A DNA stretch of 64,000 nucleotides, taken from NCBI GenBank assembly GCA_950097015.1, contig CATNEN010000008.1:4030001-4094000 (forward strand), written 5' to 3'. The position numbers were made by a program, and so were the translations under genes. Below are positions 333-51,479 of this stretch, piece after piece. This DNA is from Macrostomum hystrix (taxonomy: Eukaryota > Animalia > Platyhelminthes). The notes below the pieces were generated by a model. The model was not told the origin of the DNA and did no database searches. It was given only the letters and a program-made list of their open reading frames with translations. Each line of letters begins with the position of its first letter. The stretch's first letter is position 1.

Positions 333-1040
333 TTTTCTAAACTGAAGTTGCTAGAAAGGCCTGTTTAATAGGCGATTTAGTTGGCGTTGGATTGACACTT
401 AAGCAACAGGTGCCGGGTGTCCTCAGTGGCGTCAGGCTCGAGCCAATTGGAGCCGAGTATCAGCGAGTGGCCGTTGCGGAGCCGGGCAAGCAGGACTGCT
501 CTGCTGCTTGTCGGCGCGGCTGCTGACGTTGTTCTGGCGTGGGCCTGTTCTAGCGCCGCGTTGGGTGGCGCTGTGTCGGCGCACGCCTCATAGTCCCTGC
601 TCTCAGTGGCTCTCAGAGGTCTCAGGTAGCTAAATCTACGTAGATAAACTCAATTTAGTGGGTTTTAAAATTTAAATGTTGCTTAATTTCGAATTTTTTC
701 TAAACTGAAGTTGCTAGAAAGGCCTGTTTAATAGGCGATTTAGTTGGCGTTGGATTGACACTTGAGCAACAGGTGCCGGGTGTCCTCAGTGGCGTCAGGC
801 TCGAGCCAATTGGAGCCGAGTATCAGCGAGTGGCCGTTGCGGAGCCGGGCAAGCAGGACTGCTGCTTGTCGGCGCGGCTGCTGACGTTGTTCTGTCGTGG
901 GCCTGTGCTAGCGCCGCGTTGGGTGGCGCTGTGTCGGCGCACGCCTCATTGGCTCTCAGAGGTCTCAGGTAGCTAAATCTACGCAGATAAACTCAATTTA
1001 GTGGGTTATAAAATTTAAATGTTGCTTAATATCGAAAATT
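333..1040 (+). repeat. Tandem direct duplication of a ~363-nt GC-rich segment (333-695 and 696-~1040)
   Basis: Both copies start TTTTCTAAACTGAAGTTGCTAGAAAGGCC and are near-identical, apart from short deletions in copy 2. Confidence 0.9.
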
Positions 1041-1418
1041 CTTTAAATTTAAAGTGCAGCTTTTGATTGGTTAAGCTAAGCTGAGATTTAATACTGACTG
1101 GAACTACCATTATCAGCTTGATAAATATCGAAAACTTCCTTAACGGTTGCAACAATTTCAATGTCATGATCAAACAACCGAGTATTAGAATCCGTGCTAA
1201 ACCTGTCAGCTAATGCGTTGACGGAATTGCCATCACCTTTGTGCAATTTAAAGTCGCTTGTAGAGCTAAATATAGCAACCAATCAGATTTCGGCACTGCC
1301 TAGCGAGATTTCTGGCCTGACCAAGTGAGTGTCTGACAACAAATGAGGATCCAGGAAAAGGATAGGGTGGAGAGTGGGGTGGCTTTTGGAGTGGGGTAGT
1401 TGCAAATGTACGTTTTAA

Positions 1419-5302: not shown

Positions 5303-7608
5303 TGTCGGCTGCACATCTGGCCCGATTGCATTGGACAGGTTTAATAAATCATTATAAAAAAATTATTATTACTATTGGTTAGCAGACTCCTGAGCACACA
5401 CGCACACATTAGATACTGTGTACACAGGCACACACTGACACAGGTGTGTGCATCTGTCATCTGTCCTGACTTTCTCATTGTCAGGCAGTGTACACTTAAC
5501 TGTACAGCCTTGGAGATTGCAGTTCTTTCACTCCAATCTAGCCCTGATCTGGCCTTTTTGCCAATCTTTCACCTGTTCAATGCAAGGCAAAATGTTCACC
5601 AAAGCAGGAGGAAAATCGTTGACGCAGACAACTAGTCGCTGCGTCAGCTTGATGCAAGTTTTTTACCTCTACCGAAAGTGCATTATACTCGTAGCTCTGA
5701 ACGGCGAATATGTAGAGCGCTATATGTGGACAGAGATCGATAGAGTCGTAAGTTGGATTGTATTATTGATTGCCGGCAATTTAAACTCGTGTTTTGTGAC
5801 CCAGTGTGAGGTCGAGTCTGCAAATGACTATAACTTTTAACTAGAATTAACTCAAAAGTTCATTTTGACAGGCAGCATATTCATTTTATGAAGTGTTTTT
5901 AACTAAATCACAATGCAGCACGATCATCTAGGCATTCTAGGGTCAAATGATCGAATTATAAACATTGATCGAGCGTATTGGAAGTGCATGTAATGTGTGA
6001 CTTGATCCTTCTGTGTTAATGTGTCAACGTGATCTTCTCGATGCTGAACGACTGAGGTTTAGGCTAGCGGTATAAATTGTCGGACTGCAGCAGCCTGAGA
6101 ATCCCAGTTCTCTCGCAAATGTGAATGTGATGGTGTGCTTGATCTAAGCTGTCAGATTTGCTGGAAGTTTTTAGCGCCTTTGCGCTTATTTTCAAATAAA
6201 TATTTAATAAATTCGAAATAGAACTTGAGCATGACCTTGCCAAGCTGTTGAAGCTTTGCGGAAGAGCATGGTCGGTCAAAGTTATAAAAATACGTATTTT
6301 ATTTTTACTGACTAAAACAAACGGTATCAAATGCTTTTCTTGTTATTGACAGAACTTATTACAAACATAGTCCTAAATGCATGTCTAAATATATTTCAAA
6401 TTTCCACTGAAATTTACTCAAAAGCATTGGAAAAAGTGTGATAAACTAAGCCATTATTTTAAATGCAATCCTCATGTGACCAGCTTTCAGAACTATCCTT
6501 GTAATTGTAACGCAGGTACTTACACATGGTTTAGGCAAGATATGGGCAAGAGACGTAATAATTTCCCGATTGATATTCATATTTAAATAAGGGCTCACTA
6601 ACGTATAAAATACTTGTAATTCGTAAATTTATTACTGCGAAACTTGACAGATGCAACTAGGATAAATTTTCAAAAGCAAATATTTTTTGTCAAACGCAGG
6701 TTTAAAGTATGGAGCCTATGCTCCTATCTCCGTAGTGTATTTTCTTGTACTTTAAAAAATTAAGTTATTCAATGCAAAGAAAGTGTTAGTATTTTCTAGT
6801 GAAATTGGTCCTAGGGGCAACTAAGTTGATTTAATACTCCACTTTCAAATCAATTTTTTCAGTGTCATCACAGGCCAAACCTGTTGTTTTGTTGTGCTAA
6901 ATTTAATCACTGCTATAGGCAAATTTTTGCATATCTATTTGTGAAGCACTTGTTAAAAAATAGCACAGATCAGGTGTTTGTAAGCACTAAGGTATTTAGA
7001 AGTAAGCCTTAATAAGTGTAGCATAATATTGTTTTTATAATTCATTAAAAAACAATATGTGGAGTTTCTTCACATAAGCACATGTGAAGAAACTGGAATA
7101 AAAACATGATAAATACCAATCTCATCAAATTCAATTGACCTCTGGTAGGACATAGGCCCTATCAAGTAGGTTTAGGACCAAGACTGCCACACACCAAGAC
7201 CACCACAGCTAGGGGGAATAACTGAGTATTCCATTGGATAACTTTTAGGTGGGTAAATGTGAGGTTGGCGGTGGCTGGGGGTCTTGTAGAGGTTTACTGG
7301 CAGTAAAGTAATTTCACTTCAAATCCAAAACAAAAACTAAAATGATGTTTCTCAGGTTCTTAGTCTCTTTTTTTAATGGGTTAAAAAAATCTTCTTTATA
7401 AAAATATTAAAAGATAATTAAAAAATGAATATAATTACTTTGTTAATATTAAAGGCTTCTAAATGAAAATTAAAGGACTTTAATTGCAAGAATAGTGGTA
7501 GTAAATAAATGTTTACAATAGATTTGCAATACAATTAATTGAGAAGCAGACTAGAATACTATTCAAGCTGACTGACTAAGATAATGCATCCATATATATA
7601 GAGAAGGA

Positions 7609-8600: not shown

Positions 8601-25750
<17,150 letters not shown>

Positions 25751-26623
25751 TATTCGTTTAGCGAACAAGTTAAACTCCTCTTTTTAATGATTTCCAAAGC
25801 TTTATGTTTTGTTTGATTAAACGCGCCGTGATTCAGTTTGCAGAAGATCGAATGCGGGATCTTGAAAATGTGATTGTTTTATTATTTTTAACTCCTTTTT
25901 CACCAAAGCTACTTTCGTACAGTAGTGTGTAATGCGTTCTGATAGTGGTAATCTCGTATGTAGATTTTATATCCGGAAAATTCATTTTTCGTTCCTGATA
26001 AAAGGAAAATTAGCACCCCGACAACTAGCATCAGCTTTTGGTTTGCTAAAGTGCGGAGATCATTTTGAACTTCACTTGTGACCCGCATCAATAAAAAAAG
26101 CTTTCAGAATCATTAGCCGAACCTGCTGTGCATCATCATCAGTTTCATTCCTGATGACAGACTTTTTTTCACAACTTCGATTGACTTTTCCCGTTGATTT
26201 TAAATAATTATTTTCAAATTGAAATGATGATTTGAAATGCTAGCACAGTTTTTCCTTAGCTCATTGTTATGTACTTTTTATTGCCACTTATCGCATCTCA
26301 GTGTGCATAATTGCTGTAAATTGTTTTGCTACTAAAACGCTGGTGTGGTAATTATTGACTAATTTAATTTGCAAATAAACTATATATGGATTGTCATCTT
26401 CGAAAGAGAATATTTTTGCACAGCTTTTTTATTCTAAATAGCACTTGATACTGTCTTTGTAGTATCCTTGCAAATAACGAACACTGCAGAGGCTGCGTGT
26501 AGTAGAGTTATAGTTGAAAAGGATGTGCGCTGATAGCAAGCACTCGGCAGTAGATTTGCTTGAAGCGTGTATTTGTAGTAGTCTGTGCTAGCAATAATAG
26601 CTGGAGGACCCCAAAGGAGTTTC

Positions 26624-26767
26624 TATTTATAGGCGGGAGCGCGAGTGGGGGAACTTTCCAGAAGGATACCATGCATGGCACGCACGCACACGAGAGAAGG
26701 GTCGAGAAGATTCTGGAATAAACAAATGAACTCACGCGTTATAACAAATGAGGGAAGTTTCTAGAAA
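26624..26767 (-). promoter_or_regulatory. Heat-shock-type Pol II promoter: three perfect HSEs and a TATA box
   Basis: nGAAnnTTCnnGAAn at 26650-26664, 26705-26719 and 26753-26767. TATAAATAG reads on the minus strand at 26631-26623, about 19 nt from the proximal HSE, with a CCCGCC GC-box between them. Confidence 0.8.
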
Positions 26768-27055
26768 CTGCAGAGAAGCACGAATAATTGCACGATCGCC
26801 ATAACAGTCTTGTTTACTTTTTTAGGTAACAACGAATTACACAGTTTTTGCAGTTTCAAAAGTTTACTTTTGAAAAGTGGTGAAAACACGTAAAAATTCT
26901 TTCCTCACGATTCTTATCACACTCCGCACTTCGAGGATAGATCTTGGGTGCAGCTAAAGGGTCGGAAATAAATAGAATTCGTTTTTTTAGTTTACTTCTT
27001 AAAACTAGGTTTTAACGAATAATGTAAACGATGCGTACTTTATGCTTCTCTCTAT

Positions 27056-27299
27056 GCACAGCCGCAGCTATTGCGCGGCGCATCTGAAGGCTGCGTACAG
27101 CTGTTCAGTCCATAGACTGGGGGGGGACACCACACCCACATTTAATTATATCCGAGCAAATTCTGTTACATATTTAACAGCTGAAGTAATGCAGAATTAA
27201 GCGTCTTGAGAAAGGACACACATTGTTCCACTGAAGTCGGGAATCGAACCCCAGAACTTCAAGTCGTGAGTCCGACGCCCTAACCACTAGGCTACTACC
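27056..27299 (-). mobile_element. tRNA-headed CORE-like SINE family B, near full length
   Basis: Minus strand reads TAGCCTAGTGGTTAGGG (A-box) ... GGTTCGATTCCC (B-box), then GTGTCCTTTCTCAAGACGCTTAATT..TTACTTCAG (CORE-like). The 3' tail is shared with 5089-5302. Confidence 0.8.
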
Positions 27300-28996
27300 T
27301 CTTTTGGTTACAACCTCTTTTCTCTCTCATAAAGCTCATTAATACCTTTGCGTTATTCACAAATGCAAATTAGAGGTGGGTCCGCGCAATTCATCTTTTC
27401 CGAGTTTGATATTTTGATTCAAATAAACAAATAATGCATGGTGTAATCGACTTTGCTATTATTCAACTAGTTTTGCGGTAAAATGGAGGTAAAAATGATA
27501 CTTTTGTGCCATTTATTTTAATAACGTTGTTTTGATAATGCCAAAATGTTTTGTATGTAATGAATATAATTTATGTACTTTTTTCGAAACCGATCCCTAT
27601 TAGCCTGGACTGGCAGTCTTTTAACGGCGTCTTTGCTTTTGGTAGGAGACTTTGGGCAGCGCATGTATATAGACTAGAGACGGCGTTTAATTTTTTTGTG
27701 GTCAAACTGTTATTGATAAAATTATTTTTAGGAAGTTCGGTCTTTGCTTTATTCAGTTTTAGTTAATTTCGTCTATTCTCTAACTTCTAAGGTCTATATT
27801 TTCTTAAACAATCGTCTTGGATCCTCTTGACTCTTATCTCATGTATGCTTGGCAGAGTATTGGCCTATGCCATGTAGAAATAATATAAACAAAAATCATC
27901 GTGAGGGATTTCGTATTTTTTGGTGTTTACACGGACCACAACAAACAGACCCAACAGAATTAAAAACAGTCATATCCTCACCTCAGTAAAGAGCAAATTA
28001 CTCGAGCAATAGAAAATATATGTTTGTTTCAAGAGAAGTGACCCAGTGTTCAATTTAATCTGTTTCAATTTATGGCTATAAAAATTCGACTGACAAGTAA
28101 GTGCTTTGTGTGATATGTTATATGATGTGATATGATATGTGATATGATAGGCCCTATATTGCAACATTATATTTTTTGAATTTAGGCCAACCTGTTAGAT
28201 ATGCTAAATAAAATTGTTTTGTGGCTTTTTAAAGGGATATAAATGTCAATCCTTCTGGTGAATTGTGTTGCAGCATTAGTATTATTAATATTTAGCAGTT
28301 AAGTAGTCTATTATTACTTGGAAGTAGGATTAGGCCTAGTAGTACATAATCATAGAATTTAAATTTTTAAAGAAATAGTAGTATCCAGCTATTTTTATAT
28401 GAAGTAAGATATATTAAATGCCAGTTTTTTATGATAATTTGTTCATTTGAGGAGACATAGGATTTGAATTTAATTTTTTCTGCTTTAACTTTCTAGATTC
28501 AACTAGTTTTTTTCTAACCAACAAAAACCTGTCTTAAATATAATTGTTTTATCTAATTTAAAGTTTGTACATAGTCAATATAAGTGTTTGTGTTTCTCAA
28601 AACTACCATAAAATTGCAAGGCAAATGTAGATATTTTCTTAGCATCATTTATAGCTAATAAAACTATGTTAACTTAAGTTTTTGTACACTGATTTGTCTC
28701 ACATAGCTGAAATATAAAGCAGTTTTAATATAGTTTCATAGTTTACAAACTTTGGGAAACCACAAGCGTTTTTCTATTTTAATATAAAATATTCTCCATT
28801 GTGCTTTGGTTCATTTAACTGTAAGATGTGTTACCAGCCTTAGCTGGGTAGAAATTAGGGTTGGTGTTGTGACAAGTCAAGTTTAAAAAAATCCCTGGTA
28901 GAATAAAGTCAAATACTGTAAAGCTATAATAAACTATTGTTTTCATGCCCTTACTTAGTTTTGCATCTTATTATCCGTTTTTAACTTTTTTTTCAG

Positions 28997-33664
<4,668 letters not shown>

Positions 33665-43149: not shown

Positions 43150-44224
43150 CGCTTTATTCACTAGATTTTTCCTCTAGCTTGGGGAAGAGGACAATATTAC
43201 AGATTTGCTTACTGTGCTACTGAATAACGCTTGCGAGTAGATAGTTTAGGACATGGTCGACGTTTTCTAACCAATACTCAGCTTCGATGCTACCGATTTG
43301 AATTAACTGGCTTATATTTCCACCTTGGCTTGTATTTTTTTCTTCATCGTTTCCTTTAGTTTTCATATTTTTCTTTGGCTTGCATTTTTGTTTCTTGGGT
43401 TGGTATGAACATGGATTGGATAGTCGGATCAGATTTATGCAGTTCGACTGTTGACAAATAACAGTCACCGAGGATTTAAGAATATCACGTACTATTCTTA
43501 GTAACTCTTGTTTTTAGCTAGGCCCCAGTCATACTACTCACTATTTGAGCAAGTAGGCCATATTGTGTACGTTTTTTTCGCACGTTGTAACTGACCTTTG
43601 CTTTCTTGCTATTACAATTAGCCGCCGAGTGTTTTAATGTTTTAAATGATTTCATAGAAGATTTTATTTATATTCTCCTAATCCCATCTTTTTTAGTTCC
43701 GTATTTTAGTCTTTTCTAGCAATTCTCACATTTTTCATTAGTAGTCTACGACGAATTTTTACGATAAAATGACGCTTCAATGCGATATACTCTACTGACA
43801 GTAGAAATTATAGCTTTTTTCCGCGCGTTCTACAAATCGAATGTTATCGAATAATGTTTGCGATTCGCTAAATCCTGGTTGACGCTTTTTTATTCCTGGT
43901 TGTCATTTAAAGCCATGCCATATTGATAGAAGATTTTTACTCATTCCCACTTGGCTTTTCGCTGCTTTCACTGAGCAGTTTTCAAACTATTCGGATGGAC
44001 TATTGCATGGTAGTTTATTGCTTGCTTCTATTTTTTAATCGGTTTCAGAGTGAACACTTTTAAATAAAAACTCAGTATCGTAATTCGATTACAAAATTGG
44101 CTTTTTATCTTCCAATCGATGATTTCTTTAATATTCGTGCATTCTTATAATATTTTACTTGTTACCTGTTTCATTTCTACTCGCCTTCAGTTCTACCCCT
44201 CTCTCTCTATTTCTAACCCTCCCT

Positions 44225-47200
44225 GTTTCATTCCCATTCCACCCTCCATCTTTCATTTCTACCCCTCCCTCCTTCTTTTCTACACCATCCCTCCTTCTTT
44301 TCTACACCATCCCTCCTTCATTTCTACACCATCCCTCCTTCTTTTCCACACCATCCCTCCTTCATTTCTACACCATCCCTCCTTCATTTCTACATCATCC
44401 CTCCTTCATTTCTACACCATCCCTCCTTCTTTTCTACACCATCCCTCCTTCATTTCTACACCATCCCTCCTTCATTTTCTACACCATCCCTCCTTCATTT
44501 CTACACCATCCCTCCTTCATTTCTACACCATCCCTCCTTCATTTCCACACCATCCCTCCTTCTTTTCTACACCATCCCTCCTTCATTTCCACACCATCCC
44601 TCCTTCTTTTCTACACCATCCCTCCTTCATTTCTACACCATCCCTCCTTCATTTCTACACCATCCCTCCTTCTTTTCTACACCATCCCTCCTTCTTTTCT
44701 ACACCATCCCTCCTTCTTTTCTACACCATCCCTCCTTCATTTCTACACCATCCCTCCTTCATTTCCACACCATCCCTCCTTCTTTTCTACACCATCCCTC
44801 CTTCTTTTCTACACCATCCCTCCTTCATTTCTACACCATCCCTCCTTCTTTTCTACACCATCCCTCCTTCATTTCTACACCATCCCTCCTTCATTTCTAC
44901 ACCATCCCTCCTTCATTTCTACACCATCCCTCCTTCATTTCTACACCATCCCTCCTTCATTTCTACACCATCCCTCCTTCATTTCTACACCATCCCTCCT
45001 TCATTTCTACACCATCCCTCCTTCATTTCTACACCATCCCTCCTTCATTTCTACACCATCCCTCCTTCATTTCTACACCATCCCTCCTTCTTTTCTACAC
45101 CATCCCCTCCTCATTTCTACACCATCCCTCCTTCATTTCTACACCATCCCTCCTCATTTCTACACCATCCCTCCTTCATTTCTACACCATCCCTCCTTCT
45201 TTTCTACACCATCCCTCCTTCATTCTACACCATCCCTCCTTCATTTCTACACCATCCCTCCTTCTTTTCCACACCGTCCCTCCTTCATTTCTACACCATC
45301 CCTCCTTCATTTCTACACCATCCCTCCTTCATTTCTACACCATCCCTCCTTCTTTTCTACACCATCCCTCCTTCATTTCTACACCATCCCTCCTTCTTTC
45401 TACACCATCCCTCCTTCATTTCTACACCATCCCTCCTTCTTTTCTACACCAATCCCTCCTTCATTTCTACACCATCCCTCCTTCTTTTCTACACCATCCC
45501 TCCTTCTTTCTACACCATCCCTCCTTCATTTCTACACCATCCCTCCTTCATTTCTACACCATCCCTCCTTCATTTCTACACCATCCCTCCTTCATTTCTA
45601 CACCATCCCTCCTTCTTTTCTACACCATCCCTCCTTCTTTTCTACACCATCCCTCCTTCTTTTCTACACCATCCCTCCTTCTTTTCTACACCATCCCTCC
45701 TTCATTTCTACACCATCCCTCCTTCATTTCTACACCATCCCTCCTTCTTTTCTACACCATCCCTCCTTCATTTCTACACCATCCCTCCTTCTTTTCTACA
45801 CCATCCCTCCTTCATTTCTACACCATCCCTCCTTCTTTTCTACACCATCCCTCCTTCTTTTCTACACCATCCCTCCTTCATTTCCACACCATCCCTCCTT
45901 CTTTTCCACACCATCCCTCCTTCTTTTCTACACCATCCCTCCTTCATTTCTACACCATCCCTCCTTCTTTTCTACACCATCCCTCCTTCTTTTCTACACC
46001 ATCCCTCCTTCATTTCTACACCATCCCTCCTTCTTTTCTACACCATCCCTCCTTCATTTCTACACCATCCCTCCTTCTTTCTACACCATCCCTCCTTCAT
46101 TTCTACACCATCCCTCCTTCATTTCTACACCATCCCTCCTTCTTTTCTACACCATCCCTCCTTCTTTCTACACCATCCCTCCTTCATTTTCTACACCATC
46201 CCTCCTTCTTTTCTACACCATCCCTCCTTCTTTTCTACACCATCCCTCCTTCATTTCTACACCATCCCTCCTTCATTTCTACACCATCCCTCCTTCATTT
46301 CTACACCATCCCTCCTTCATTTCTACACCATCCCTCCTTCATTTCTACACCATCCCTCCTTCATTTCTACACCATCCCTCCTTCATTTCTACACCATCCC
46401 TCCTTCATTTCTACACCATCCCTCCTTCTTTTCTACACCATCCCTCCTTCTTTTCTACACCATCCCTCCTTCTTTTCTACACCATCCCTCCTTCTTTTCT
46501 ACACCATCCCTCCTTCATTTCTACACCATCCCTCCTTCTTTCTACACCATCCCTCCTTCTTTTCTACACCATCCCTCCTTCATTTCTACACCATCCCTCC
46601 TTCATTTCCACACCATCCCTCCTTCTTTTCCTACACCATCCCTCCTTCTTTTCTACACCATCCCTCCTTCATTTCTACACCATCCCTCCTTCATTTCTAC
46701 ACCATCCCTCCTTCTTTTCTACACCATCCCTCCTTCTTTTCTACACCATCCCTCCTTCTTTTCTACACCATCCCTCCTTCTTTTCTACACCATCCCTCCT
46801 TCATTTCTACACCATCCCTCCTTCTTTTCTACACCATCCCTCCTTCATTTCTACACCATCCCTCCTTCTTTTCTACACCATCCCTCCTTCTTTTCTACAC
46901 CATCCCTCCTTCTTTTCTACACCATCCCTCCTTCTTTTCTACACCATCCCTCCTTCATTTCTACACCATCCCTCCTTCTTTTCCTACACCATCCCTCCTT
47001 CTTTTCTACACCATCCCTCCTTCATTTCTACACCATCCCTCCTTCATTTCTACACCATCCCTCCTTCTTTTCTACACCATCCCTCCTTCATTTCTACACC
47101 ATCCCTCCTTCTTTTCTACACCATCCCTCCTTCTTTTCTACACCATCCCTCCTTCATTTCTACACCATCCCTCCTTCTTTTCTACACCATCCCTCCTTCA

Positions 47201-48600
47201 TTTCTACACCATCCCTCCTTCTTTTCTACACCATCCCTCCTTCTTTTCTACACCATCCCTCCTTCTTTTCTACACCATCCCTCCTTCTTTTCTACACCAT
47301 CCCTCCTTCATTTCTACACCATCCCTCCTTCTTTTCTACACCATCCCTCCTTCATTTCTACACCATCCCTCCTTCTTTTCCACACCATCCCTCCTTCTTT
47401 TCTACACCATCCCTCCTTCATTTCTACACCATCCCTCCTTCTTTTCTACACCATCCCTCCTTCATTTCTACACCATCCCTCCTTATTTTCTACACCATCC
47501 CTCCTTCTTTTCTACACCATCCCTCCTTCATTTCTACACCATCCCTCCTTCTTTTCTACACCATCCCTCCTTCTTTTCCACACCATCCCTCCTTCTTTTC
47601 TACACCATCCCTCCTTCTTTTCTACACCATCCCTCCTTCATTTCTACACCATCCCTCCTTCTTTTCTACACCATCCCTCCTTCTTTTCTACACCATCCCT
47701 CCTTCATTTCTACACCATCCCTCCTTCTTTTCTACACCATCCCTCCTTCATTTCTACACCATCCCTCCTTCTTTTCTACACCATCCCTCCTTCATTTCTA
47801 CACCATCCCTCCTTCATTTCTACACCATCCCTCCTTCTTTTCTACACCATCCCTCCTTCTTTTCTACACCATCCCTCCTTCTTTTCTACACCATCCCTCC
47901 TTCTTTTCTACACCATCCCTCCTTCTTTTCTACACCATCCCTCCTTCATTTCTACACCATCCCTCCTTCATTTCTACACCATCCCTCCTTCATTTCTACA
48001 CCATCCCTCCTTCATTTCTACACCATCCCTCCTTCATTTCTACACCATCCCTCCTTCATTTCTACACCATCCCTCCTTCTTTTCTACACCATCCCTCCTT
48101 CATTTCTACACCATCCCTCCTTCATTTCTACACCATCCCTCCTTCATTTCTACACCATCCCTCCTTCTTTTCCACACCATCCCTCCTTCATTTCTACACC
48201 ATCCCTCCTTCATTTCTACACCATCCCTCCTTCATTTCTACACCATCCCTCCTTCTTTTCTACACCATCCCTCCTTCTTTTCTACACCATCCCTCCTTCA
48301 TTTCTACACCATCCCTCCTTCTTTTCTACACCATCCCTCCTTCATTTCTACACCATCCCTCCTTCTTTTCTACACCATCCCTCCTTCATTTCTACACCAT
48401 CCCTCCTTCTTTTCTACACCATCCCTCCTTCATTTCTACACCATCCCTCCTTCTTTTCTACACCATCCCTCCTTCTTTTCTACACCATCCCTCCTTCTTT
48501 TCTACACCATCCCTCCTTCTTTTCCACACCATCCCTCCTTCTTTTCCACACCATCCCTCCTTCTTTTCCACACCATCCCTCCTTCTTTTCTACCTCTCGC
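44225..48600. repeat. 4.4-kb minisatellite, 22-nt unit TTTCTACACCATCCCTCCTTC(A/T)
   Basis: About 200 units in the intergenic region between the convergent CPT1 and SLC6 3' ends. Confidence 0.99.
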
Positions 48601-49194
48601 TCCTTTTTTTCTACCCATCCCTCCTTTATTTCTACCCTCCCCTCCATTTTTACTCCAATATTTGATCATTTCTACCCCCTCCTTATGCAGCGGCTGTGAC
48701 ACTAGCTGTACACCTGGCTCAACAGGGTTAAGTTTCATTTCTTATTAATCGATGGTCGGAACATATACTCGTACTACTATTCCAACCGCATTATCAACTA
48801 ATAAATGCAACCAATCCAATTGTTTCGGGGCTCAGCTAACAGCAAGAAAACTTGAGTGTGAATTGTGTTCGAGCAATGACCAGCTCTCCACCAGCTGCTT
48901 CTGGCCTTCTTTTTGCACTTTTCTGTGCATTTTACGATCCAGTCTTGACGATTGCATTGGCTGCGGCAATAATAAGGGAGACAGGATATTTAAAAAAACA
49001 AGAGAAATCAGCGCATGCAACGCGGAACTGTGGACTTTTTCGGAACAGCAAACAAACAACAATGGAAAGCTAGTAGTCTACTTTTTGCTATAAGTAAATG
49101 AAGACAAACAATGAGATATTATTGAGCTTCTAATTGGATCCGACAGGGTGTCTGACAAACCTGAAAGTAAACTATAGAGATTTTTCAAGTAAGT

Positions 49195-51100
49195 ATCAAT
49201 TCCTCCCGTCTCCCAATTCCTCCCGTCTCCCAATTATTCTCGTCTACCAATTCTTCCCGTCTCCCAATTCTTCCCGTCTCCCAGTTCTTCCCGTCTCCCA
49301 ATTCTTCCCGTCTCCCAATTCCTCCCGTCTCCCAATTCTTCCCGTCTCCCAGTTCTTCCCGTCTCCCAATTCTTCCCGTCTCCCAATTCTTCCCGTCTCC
49401 CAATTCTTCTCGTCTCCCAATTCTTCTCGTCTCCCAATTCTTCCCGTCTCACAATTTTCCCGTCTCCCAATTCTTCCCATCTCCCAATTCTTCCCTTCTC
49501 TCAATTCTTCCCGTCTCATAATTCTTGCCGTCTCCCAATTCTTCCCGTCTCCCAATTCTTCCCGTCTCTCAATTCTTCCCGTCTCCCAATTCTTCCCGTC
49601 TCCCAATTCTTCTCGTCTCCCAATTCTTCTCGTCTCCCAATTCTTCCCGTCTCACAATTTTCCCGTCTCCCAATTCTTCCCATCTCCCAATTCTTCCCTT
49701 CTCTCAATTCTTCCCGTCTCATAATTCTTGCCGTCTCCCAATTCTTCCCGTCTCCCAATTCTTCTCGTCTCCCAATTCTTCTCGTCTCCCAATTCTTCTC
49801 GTCTCCCAATTCTTCTCGTCTCCCAATTCTTCCCGTCTCCCAATTCTTCCCGTCTCCCAGTTCTTCCCGTCTCCCAATTCTTCCCGTCTCCCAATTCTTC
49901 CCGTCTCCCAATTCTTCTCGTCTCCCAATTCTTCTCGTCTCCCAATTCTTCCCGTCTCACAATTTTCCCGTCTCCCAATTCTTCCCATCTCCCAATTCTT
50001 CCCTTCTCTCAATTCTTCCCGTCTCATAATTCTTGCCGTCTCCCAATTCTTCCCGTCTCCCAATTCTTCCCGTCTCCCAATTCTTCCCGTCTCCCAATTC
50101 TTCCCGTCTCCCAATTCTTCTCGTCTCCCAATTCTTCTCGTCTCCCAATTCTTCCCGTCTCACAATTTTCCCGTCTCCCAATTCTTCCCATCTCCCAATT
50201 CTTCCCTTCTCTCAATTCTTCCCGTCTCATAATTCTTGCCGTCTCCCAATTCTTCCCGTCTCCCAATTCTTCTCGTCTCCCAATTCTTCTCGTCTCCCAA
50301 TTCTTCTCTTCTCCCAATTCTTCTCGTCTCCCAATTCTTCCCGTCTCCCAATTCTTCCCGTCTCACAATTCTTCCCGTCTCCCAATTCCTCCCGTCTCCC
50401 AATTCTTCCCTTCTCTCAATTCTTCCCGTCTCCTAATTCTTCCCGTCTCCCAATTCTTCCCGTCTCCCAATTCTTCTCGTCTCCCAATTCTTCTCGTCTC
50501 CCAATTCTTCTCGTCTCCCAATTCTTCTCGTCTCCCAATTCTTCCCTTCTCTCAATTCTTCCCTTCCCTCAATTCTCCCCTTCTCTCAATTCTTCCCGTC
50601 TCCCAATTCTTCTCGTCTCCCAATTCTTCTCGTCTCCCAATTCTTCCCTTCCCTCAATTCTCCCCTTCTCTCAATTCTTCCCTTCCCTCAATTCTTCCCT
50701 TCCCTCAATTCTTCCCTTCCCTCAATTCTCCCCTTCTCTCAATTCTTCCCGTCTCTCAATTCTTCCCTTCCCTCAATTCTCCCCTTCTCACAATTCTTCC
50801 CGTCTCCCAATTCTTCCCTTCTCTCAATTCTTCCCGTCTCCTAATTCTTCCCGTCTCCCAATTCTTCCCGTCTCCCAATTCTTCTCGTCTCCCAATTCTT
50901 CTCGTCTCCCAATTCTTCTCGTCTCCCAATTCTTCCCTTCCCTCAATTCTTCCCTTCTCTCAATTCTTCCCTTCCCTCAATTCTCCCCTTCTCTCAATTC
51001 TCCCCTTCTCTCAATTCTTCCCTTCCCTCAATTCTTCCCTTCCCTCAATTCTTCCCTTCTCTCAATTCTTCCCTTCTCTCAATTCTTCCCTTCTCTCACT
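49195..51100. repeat. Minisatellite, 17-nt unit TCTCCCAATTCTTCCCG
   Basis: About 110 units with higher-order blocks (305-nt offset). Confidence 0.98.
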
Positions 51101-51479
51101 TCTTACCTTCTCTCAATTTTTCCATTCTCACCATTTTTACCTGCTTCCAATTCTTGCATTTTCCCAATTCTTCCTTTCACCCAATTTGCAAGTTAGCAAA
51201 AATTGAAAATAACATACATATAGATGCACATACTTGTACGTACAACAGTTACTTCATAGATGAAGCAACAGGTATAACAACTAATCTAAAATAACAAAAA
51301 CAATACAATACTTTATTAAAAAACACCAACTGCGAGACAACTACAGGCAAAGAAGCGGGCTGTAGCTAGTCGATTAAATCAATTTAAATTTTTCCTAAAA
51401 ATTGAATAATTTTCGCAGAAATGTATAGATTAGCATGGGCCATATGACTCCCTAGTTGCATTTGACCTTCCCGCAGCAA

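Follow-up and report, generated by a model that had tools for sequence, protein, structure and literature searches.

We propose that positions 26458 to 26806, on the minus strand of a 64-kb stretch of the Macrostomum hystrix genome (the whole stretch analyzed, hereafter the window), are very probably best explained as a solo long terminal repeat (LTR) of a Ty3/Mdg4 (gypsy) retrotransposon with a promoter responsive to the heat-shock factor (HSF). An earlier note on this DNA had described an “orphan” heat-shock promoter, for which it offered as readings (a) the solo LTR of a heat-activated retrotransposon bearing heat-shock elements (HSEs), (b) a short heat-induced noncoding RNA, possibly reading antisense into the MATE gene, and (c) an enhancer of the adjacent Smurf-like gene. 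The structure of the block fits the first of these; it is a 349-bp solo LTR with its target-site duplication (TSD), and the apparent orphan promoter is thereby explained as ordinary transposon debris (Table).

Table. Features of the window and domains of the related full-length elements
Feature	Position	Strand	Basis or remark
Solo LTR, 349 bp, subfamily A, Ty3/Mdg4	26458..26806	-	ends common to all genomic copies; end-to-end alignment with LTRs of full-length elements
Upstream TSD copy, AAGAC (minus-strand reading)	26807..26811	-	flank comparison
Downstream TSD copy, AAGAC (minus-strand reading)	26453..26457	-	flank comparison
Distal HSE TTCTAGAAACTTC	26754..26766	-	part of a 5-unit HSE in sister copies; here split by an 8-bp insertion at ~26774-26781
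Middle HSE TTCCAGAATCTTC	26706..26718	-	no variation among the seven A copies examined; same sequence in subfamily B
Proximal HSE TTCTGGAAAGTTC	26651..26663	-	pattern scan, copy alignment
TATA box TATAAATAG	26623..26631	-	sister copies carry ~24 bp after the TATA box, deleted here at ~26616-26617
AATAAA in flanking host DNA, 25 nt past the LTR end	26428..26433	-	outside the repeat boundary; possible stop for read-out transcripts
MATE-like gene, MatE exons	17236-17574; 22334-22480	+	domain matches
MATE-like gene, C-terminal last exon	24221-25750, stop codon at 25750	+	ORF
Smurf/NEDD4-like gene	first recognizable C2 exon ~28945; WW 30634; HECT 32394	+	domain matches
Subfamily B ORF domains (amino acids)	CCHC zinc knuckle 280-295; Asp protease 355-449 (weak); RVT_1 596-721; RNase H 785-919; integrase 1035-1231		Pfam

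The identity of the block as a solo LTR follows from its sharp repeat ends, its TG...CA termini, the TSDs found in the window and at five other copies, and the presence in the same genome of homologous LTRs flanking gag-pol. The genome-wide BLAST search proposed in the earlier note, with positions 26392 to 26806 as the query against 220,453,370 bases in 42 contigs, recovered further copies of the block elsewhere in the genome; the published assembly comprises ~220 Mb in 42 contigs (PMC10468722). When a longer segment of the window (24001 to 29500) was compared by BLAST with the repeat loci, the similarity between copies began at 26806 and ended at 26458 every time, never extending to 26392, and the DNA outside the 349-bp unit was unrelated from locus to locus. 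Read on the minus strand, the unit opens with TGTTAT and closes with ACTACA, and these ends are identical in all copies. Hence, of the LTR-like termini that had been placed 415 nt apart, TGTTAT at 26806 stands as the start, whereas ATGACA at 26392 does not stand as the end, since all other copies stop at 26458. It is because this downstream end was set 66 nt too far that the TSD was overlooked and reported as missing: with the end corrected to 26458, a perfect 5-bp duplication, AAGAC, brackets the unit, so that the LTR identity and the TSD are both directly observed. The LTR occurs once in the window, with neither an internal region nor a second LTR, and is flanked by unique host DNA. The previously recorded AATAAA and the tiny ORFs MTIHI and MHTEMR (each ending in a stop codon) are present in the sequence; the AATAAA is not part of the element, and no polyadenylation signal was recognized within the LTR.

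Within these boundaries, the promoter motifs that had drawn attention to the block are borne out. A pattern scan located three perfect 3-unit HSEs (TTCnnGAAnnTTC) spaced ~50 nt apart on the minus strand, and the hsp70-like TATA box lies 19 nt past the proximal HSE, with the GC-box CCCGCC before it. The 64-kb window contains five perfect 3-unit HSEs, against 0.79 expected from dinucleotide shuffles, and three of the five fall inside 116 bp; the three HSEs with their TATA box are real and far above chance. The window copy also has two private lesions, namely the 8-bp insertion in the distal HSE, which leaves a perfect 3-unit HSE in place, and the ~24-bp deletion just past the TATA box, which probably includes the native start site. 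Given these lesions, the output of this decayed member may be weak or shifted.

The window copy belongs to a set of LTRs that we term subfamily A, with at least seven copies in the genome that are 81 to 88% identical to it. Most of these are isolated units of 349 to 388 bp, and at least five besides the window copy are solo copies with their own 5-bp duplications: perfect TSDs are found at four (TTAGA, AAGTT, GGGCT, and GTCAG), and at one more the TSD matches at 4/5 positions (GAATC/GATTC). Two truncated copies, on contigs C15 and C38, are still attached to an integrase. The C15 copy is without a TSD and is preceded, in the same orientation, by an integrase ORF and the polypurine tract GGTGGGGAGG; its internal sequence is 96% identical to that of the C38 copy and shows 87 to 89% DNA and 90% protein identity to ~25 further loci, which constitute an abundant full-length family. 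In both, the element breaks off ~2.0 to 2.1 kb before the 3' LTR; a search of 10 kb around either gave no 5' LTR, and no intact full-length element with the exact A-type LTR was found. Being known only from diverged solo LTRs and two truncated remnants, subfamily A looks extinct. An A-type LTR on contig C38 (L008, G000:C38:14594152-14595644) is broken into two parts by a nested insertion of ~1.1 kb of other DNA.

The sister of this set, subfamily B, is represented by at least 18 full-length elements of 5,070 bp, which carry 335-bp LTRs (TGTTGT...ACAACA), the TSD ATTGA, a polypurine tract, and a single ORF of 1,399 to 1,420 amino acids coding for gag-PR-RT-RH-IN. The domain order recovered with Pfam, PR-RT-RNase H-integrase, is that of Ty3/Mdg4 (gypsy) pol genes, the protease match being a weak one. 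Nine nucleotides past the 5' LTR lies an 18-nt primer-binding site, the complement of the 3' end of tRNA-Ser(AGA) genes present in the same genome. The single ORF, the length of ~5 kb, and the tRNA-Ser primer-binding site are compatible with the Mag clade, though not diagnostic of it; the best database relatives of the element share only 53 to 64% identity with it, the best named ones 56 to 64%, and no M. lignano protein is among the homologues listed for it. The LTR pairs of three B elements examined are identical at 335/335, 330/332, and 332/332 positions (99.4 to 100%), and at least 40 B-type LTRs are 97 to 100% alike, which indicates that subfamily B is young. Thus, the structure of the family is a matter of direct observation: a young subfamily, whose LTR pairs are identical and whose reading frames are open, exists alongside an apparently extinct one that left solo LTRs scattered near genes.

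The isolated 349- to 388-bp units that dominate subfamily A, for which an intact full-length element was not recovered, might instead be taken for a nonautonomous short repeat (TRIM-, SINE-, or MITE-like) merely resembling an LTR. We regard this as highly implausible, as two A-type copies directly follow an integrase and polypurine tract, the units can be aligned from one end to the other with the LTRs of complete gag-pol elements, and they have no terminal inverted repeats beyond TG/CA, no poly-A, and no A/B boxes.

Returning to the LTRs proper, those of subfamilies A and B align over their full length, with the three HSE clusters and the TATA box in homologous columns. The clusters of intact copies comprise 3 to 5 HSE units: in most A copies the distal cluster forms a perfect 5-unit HSE, the middle HSE does not vary among the copies aligned, and in B copies the proximal cluster has 4 units. 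Counting identical columns between A and B from a three-copy majority of the LTR, with the motif columns defined on the A copies, we observed 84% identity (52/62) in the HSE and TATA columns against 55% (168/308) elsewhere (Fisher p ~1e-5); relative to the rest of U3 alone, with the same definition of motif columns, the contrast is 84% against 56% (Fisher p ~2e-4). This conservation of the HSEs and TATA box, itself directly observed, would fit selection acting on the element to retain its HSEs and its coupling to heat. As judged from the alignment, the HSE module is older than the separation of subfamilies A and B. That the HSE/TATA module has been better preserved than the remaining LTR sequence in two diverged subfamilies goes beyond what has been reported for M. 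lignano, as does the coexistence of a young subfamily with an extinct-looking one.

The layout of the LTR also recalls the heat-shock genes of the host. M. hystrix has four intronless hsp70 genes on contig C33, with Hsp70 ORFs of 639 to 646 amino acids, whose promoters each have several HSEs, then a TATA box 14 to 15 nt past the proximal HSE, then ~150 nt of A/C-rich leader. The host promoters and the LTR are thus alike in having several HSE clusters, a TATA box 14 to 19 nt after the proximal HSE, and then an A/C-rich leader. However, an Hsp70 ORF follows only in the host genes, and nothing can be aligned between the two beyond the HSE motif: a BLAST comparison of both LTR types with 12 HSP70 loci returned only HSE-motif matches of at most 22 nt. 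As nothing aligns beyond this motif, the LTR promoter is not a recent capture of these host hsp70 promoters. Two of the C33 genes (L016/L017, G000:C33:3867893-3873260) form a divergent pair with a common HSE-rich spacer of 1.7 kb, and a full-length B-type element with HSE-bearing LTRs lies ~23 kb from this pair, at C33:3896578-3901643.

Heat-induced loci need not encode a protein, the hsr-omega gene of Drosophila, which produces a heat-induced long noncoding RNA, being a case in point. The shared HSE/TATA layout, along with the tandem arrays that lie downstream on the minus strand, could accordingly be read as marks of a host heat-shock locus, either a truncated former hsp promoter or an independent lncRNA gene of the hsr-omega type. 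Such an origin is very improbable in our estimate: the resemblance to hsp70 promoters consists of the HSE motif alone (at most 22 nt), the similarity between copies stops exactly at the LTR termini, and TSDs mark an insertion. The arrays, for their part, are located in introns of the plus-strand MATE-like gene, lie on both sides of the block, and occupy 42.6% of the window. An Rfam e-value scan of positions 25800 to 27400 yielded nothing above the gathering score for a known noncoding RNA in the LTR block. A spliced hsp gene further downstream can also be set aside: as the earlier note had remarked, no hsp coding sequence follows the LTR, and the nearest HSP70 match on the same contig is ~370 kb off (C8:3.69 Mb). 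Nor was an hsp ORF found downstream of any other copy, the HSP70 family matches all lying elsewhere in the genome.

Taking the solo-LTR reading as the preferred one, we propose the following scenario. A Ty3/Mdg4 element would have inserted between the MATE-like and Smurf/NEDD4-like genes, duplicating 5 bp of target, and recombination between its two LTRs would later have deleted the internal part. In the U3 region of the A/B family LTR, three HSE clusters ~50 nt apart precede a TATA box, which is the layout of a heat-shock gene promoter, and genes with the HSF DNA-binding domain are present in the genome; hence, HSF is expected to bind the LTR in heat. Under heat stress, trimeric HSF would occupy the HSEs and transcription would proceed from ~26600 toward lower coordinates. 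In a full element, the HSF-driven transcript would be the genomic RNA, whereas the output of the solo copy in the window would be limited to a short read-out RNA, antisense toward the 3' end of the MATE-like gene. An exact-protein look-up for RNA contigs that might place the transcription start and poly-A site gave no match.

Support for such a response comes by analogy with the congener M. lignano, for which canonical HSEs have been described in the LTRs of Ty3/Mdg4 families belonging to the Mag, CsRN1, and Gmr1/Osvaldo clades (Ustyantsev et al., Mob DNA 2025, PMC12801592), among them Mlig-id115|Mag, Mlig-id36 and Mlig-id55|CsRN1, and Mlig-id38|Gmr1/Osvaldo. Four such families are induced more than 250-fold at 37°C, and mutation of the HSEs in the Mlig-id115|Mag LTR, which has three of them, abolishes the heat induction of a reporter (PMC12801592). 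M. hystrix is mentioned neither in that article nor in its preprint. The elements of the two species agree in genus, in superfamily, and in having LTRs in which canonical HSEs (nTTCnnGAAnnTTCn) come ahead of a TATA box; the M. hystrix LTR matches Mlig-id115 in having three HSEs, the latter being compared by description only, and solo LTRs are found near host genes in both species. Heat induction has been demonstrated in M. lignano, whereas for M. hystrix we infer both HSF binding and heat induction of the LTR family from the M. lignano HSE-LTR families. Moreover, the window copy, unlike the tested M. lignano families, is a decayed solo LTR from a subfamily that looks extinct. The presence of HSEs does not by itself ensure a response to heat, as two HSE-bearing copia families of M. 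lignano are not heat-induced (PMC12801592). With the HSE-LTR strategy known from these experiments, the M. hystrix case is clear and largely expected; it extends the flatworm phenomenon to a second Macrostomum species.

Parallels are also seen farther afield. ONSEN (ATCOPIA78), of Arabidopsis and other Brassicaceae, is a heat-activated LTR retrotransposon whose LTR HSEs recruit the host heat-shock factor, and its solo or new LTR copies can render neighboring genes heat-responsive. It resembles the M. hystrix element in having HSEs in the LTR and, if the analogy holds, in being transcribed under heat stress via the host HSF; however, it is a Ty1/Copia element of plants, whereas the M. hystrix element is a Ty3/Mdg4 element of a flatworm, with the order RT-RH-IN. 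As the two are unrelated in sequence, the HSE trait is convergent. Another comparison is with Helitron1_CE of Caenorhabditis elegans, which is cited as an HSE-carrying rolling-circle transposon (PMC12801592). It is likewise a mobile element spreading HSF sites through an animal genome, but unlike the M. hystrix element it is a DNA transposon, without LTRs, such TSDs, or reverse transcription.

We also inspected seven related elements in other assemblies for HSEs in their LTRs. Four of the seven have no HSE, and in one more no LTR was recovered. The element from GCA_029979705.1 has HSE-like motifs before the TATA box, with a perfect HSE in only one of its LTRs. The element named for the sponge Corticium candelabrum, which is 56% identical in protein, has two 239-bp LTRs of the same sequence (L035:1236-1474 and 5709-5947, and likewise in L036, GCA_963422355.1) that start with a perfect 4-unit HSE (TTCTGGAAACTTCCGGAA) and have an HSE dimer ~20 nt before TATATAAA. 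HSEs are thus sporadic rather than universal in this Ty3/Mdg4 lineage. The Corticium LTR suggests that heat-coupled LTRs exist outside flatworms, and its 4-unit HSE hints that coupling to heat stress may be ancient, or have arisen repeatedly, across Metazoa.

These observations invite a wider reading, which we put forward only tentatively and consider rather less probable than its negation. It holds that the HSE module has long belonged to this Ty3/Mdg4 lineage and has been kept by selection, as opposed to a recent gain private to M. lignano, that the M. hystrix LTR is perhaps orthologous to that of Mlig-id115|Mag, and that the coupling to heat might be ancient or recurrent across Metazoa; as a separate part, the solo LTR might make its Smurf-like or MATE-like neighbor heat-responsive. 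M. hystrix belongs to the other of the two main Macrostomum clades than M. lignano, going by the contrasting mating types in the assembly paper (PMC10468722). If the LTRs were orthologous, then the HSEs would have been acquired before these two clades diverged.

The possible effects of the LTR on the host depend on its setting. It sits between two plus-strand genes, pointing away from the Smurf-like gene, whose first recognizable C2 exon is ~2.1 kb away, and toward the 3' end of the MATE-like gene, whose stop codon is reached ~700 bp beyond the LTR in the direction in which the LTR reads. If active, the LTR would produce an RNA that is short, ending near the flanking AATAAA, or that reads through antisense; it could also act as an orientation-independent HSF site on the Smurf-like gene. 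The short or antisense RNA and the Smurf-like enhancer that had been offered as readings of their own thus become possible side effects of the solo LTR. A stronger version would have the host co-opt the LTR as a heat-responsive enhancer or promoter, with HSF raising the transcription of the divergent Smurf/NEDD4-like gene or driving antisense RNA into the 3' end of the MATE-like gene. The proximity of both genes and the persistence of three perfect HSEs and a TATA box in an old copy speak for it, but the window copy is indistinguishable from other decaying solo LTRs, with its insertion in the distal HSE and its deletion in the start region, and in M. lignano only two solo HSE-LTRs lie within 2 kb of host genes, which were only mildly induced (PMC12801592). 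Hence, we consider such co-option improbable. More generally, solo LTRs with HSEs are candidates for giving rise to new heat-responsive regulation and, in scans of the M. hystrix genome, a recurrent source of false “orphan promoter” calls.

A few further features of the surroundings are recorded here in their own right. The last exon of the MATE-like gene contains an in-frame, perfect 10-fold repeat of the heptad IPDSECL (array 24529-24747, 21-bp unit, 100% matches), past which the protein continues into a long low-complexity tail with a hydrophobic segment at its end, an unusual C-terminal extension for a MATE transporter. A tRNA-like match at 27232-27301 on the minus strand, 426 bp from the LTR, was considered with a view to tRNA targeting; it is weak, scoring 33.3 bits for Rfam RF00005 (gathering score 29), and is not called by ARAGORN. 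The tandem arrays of the window number 41, all separate and of short period (14 to 45 bp), each with a unit of its own; a strong strand skew marks many of them, and most are intronic, in the MATE-like gene and its neighbors, examples of the arrays being those at 14375-17209, 17548-19499, 44216-48635, and 49197-51186.
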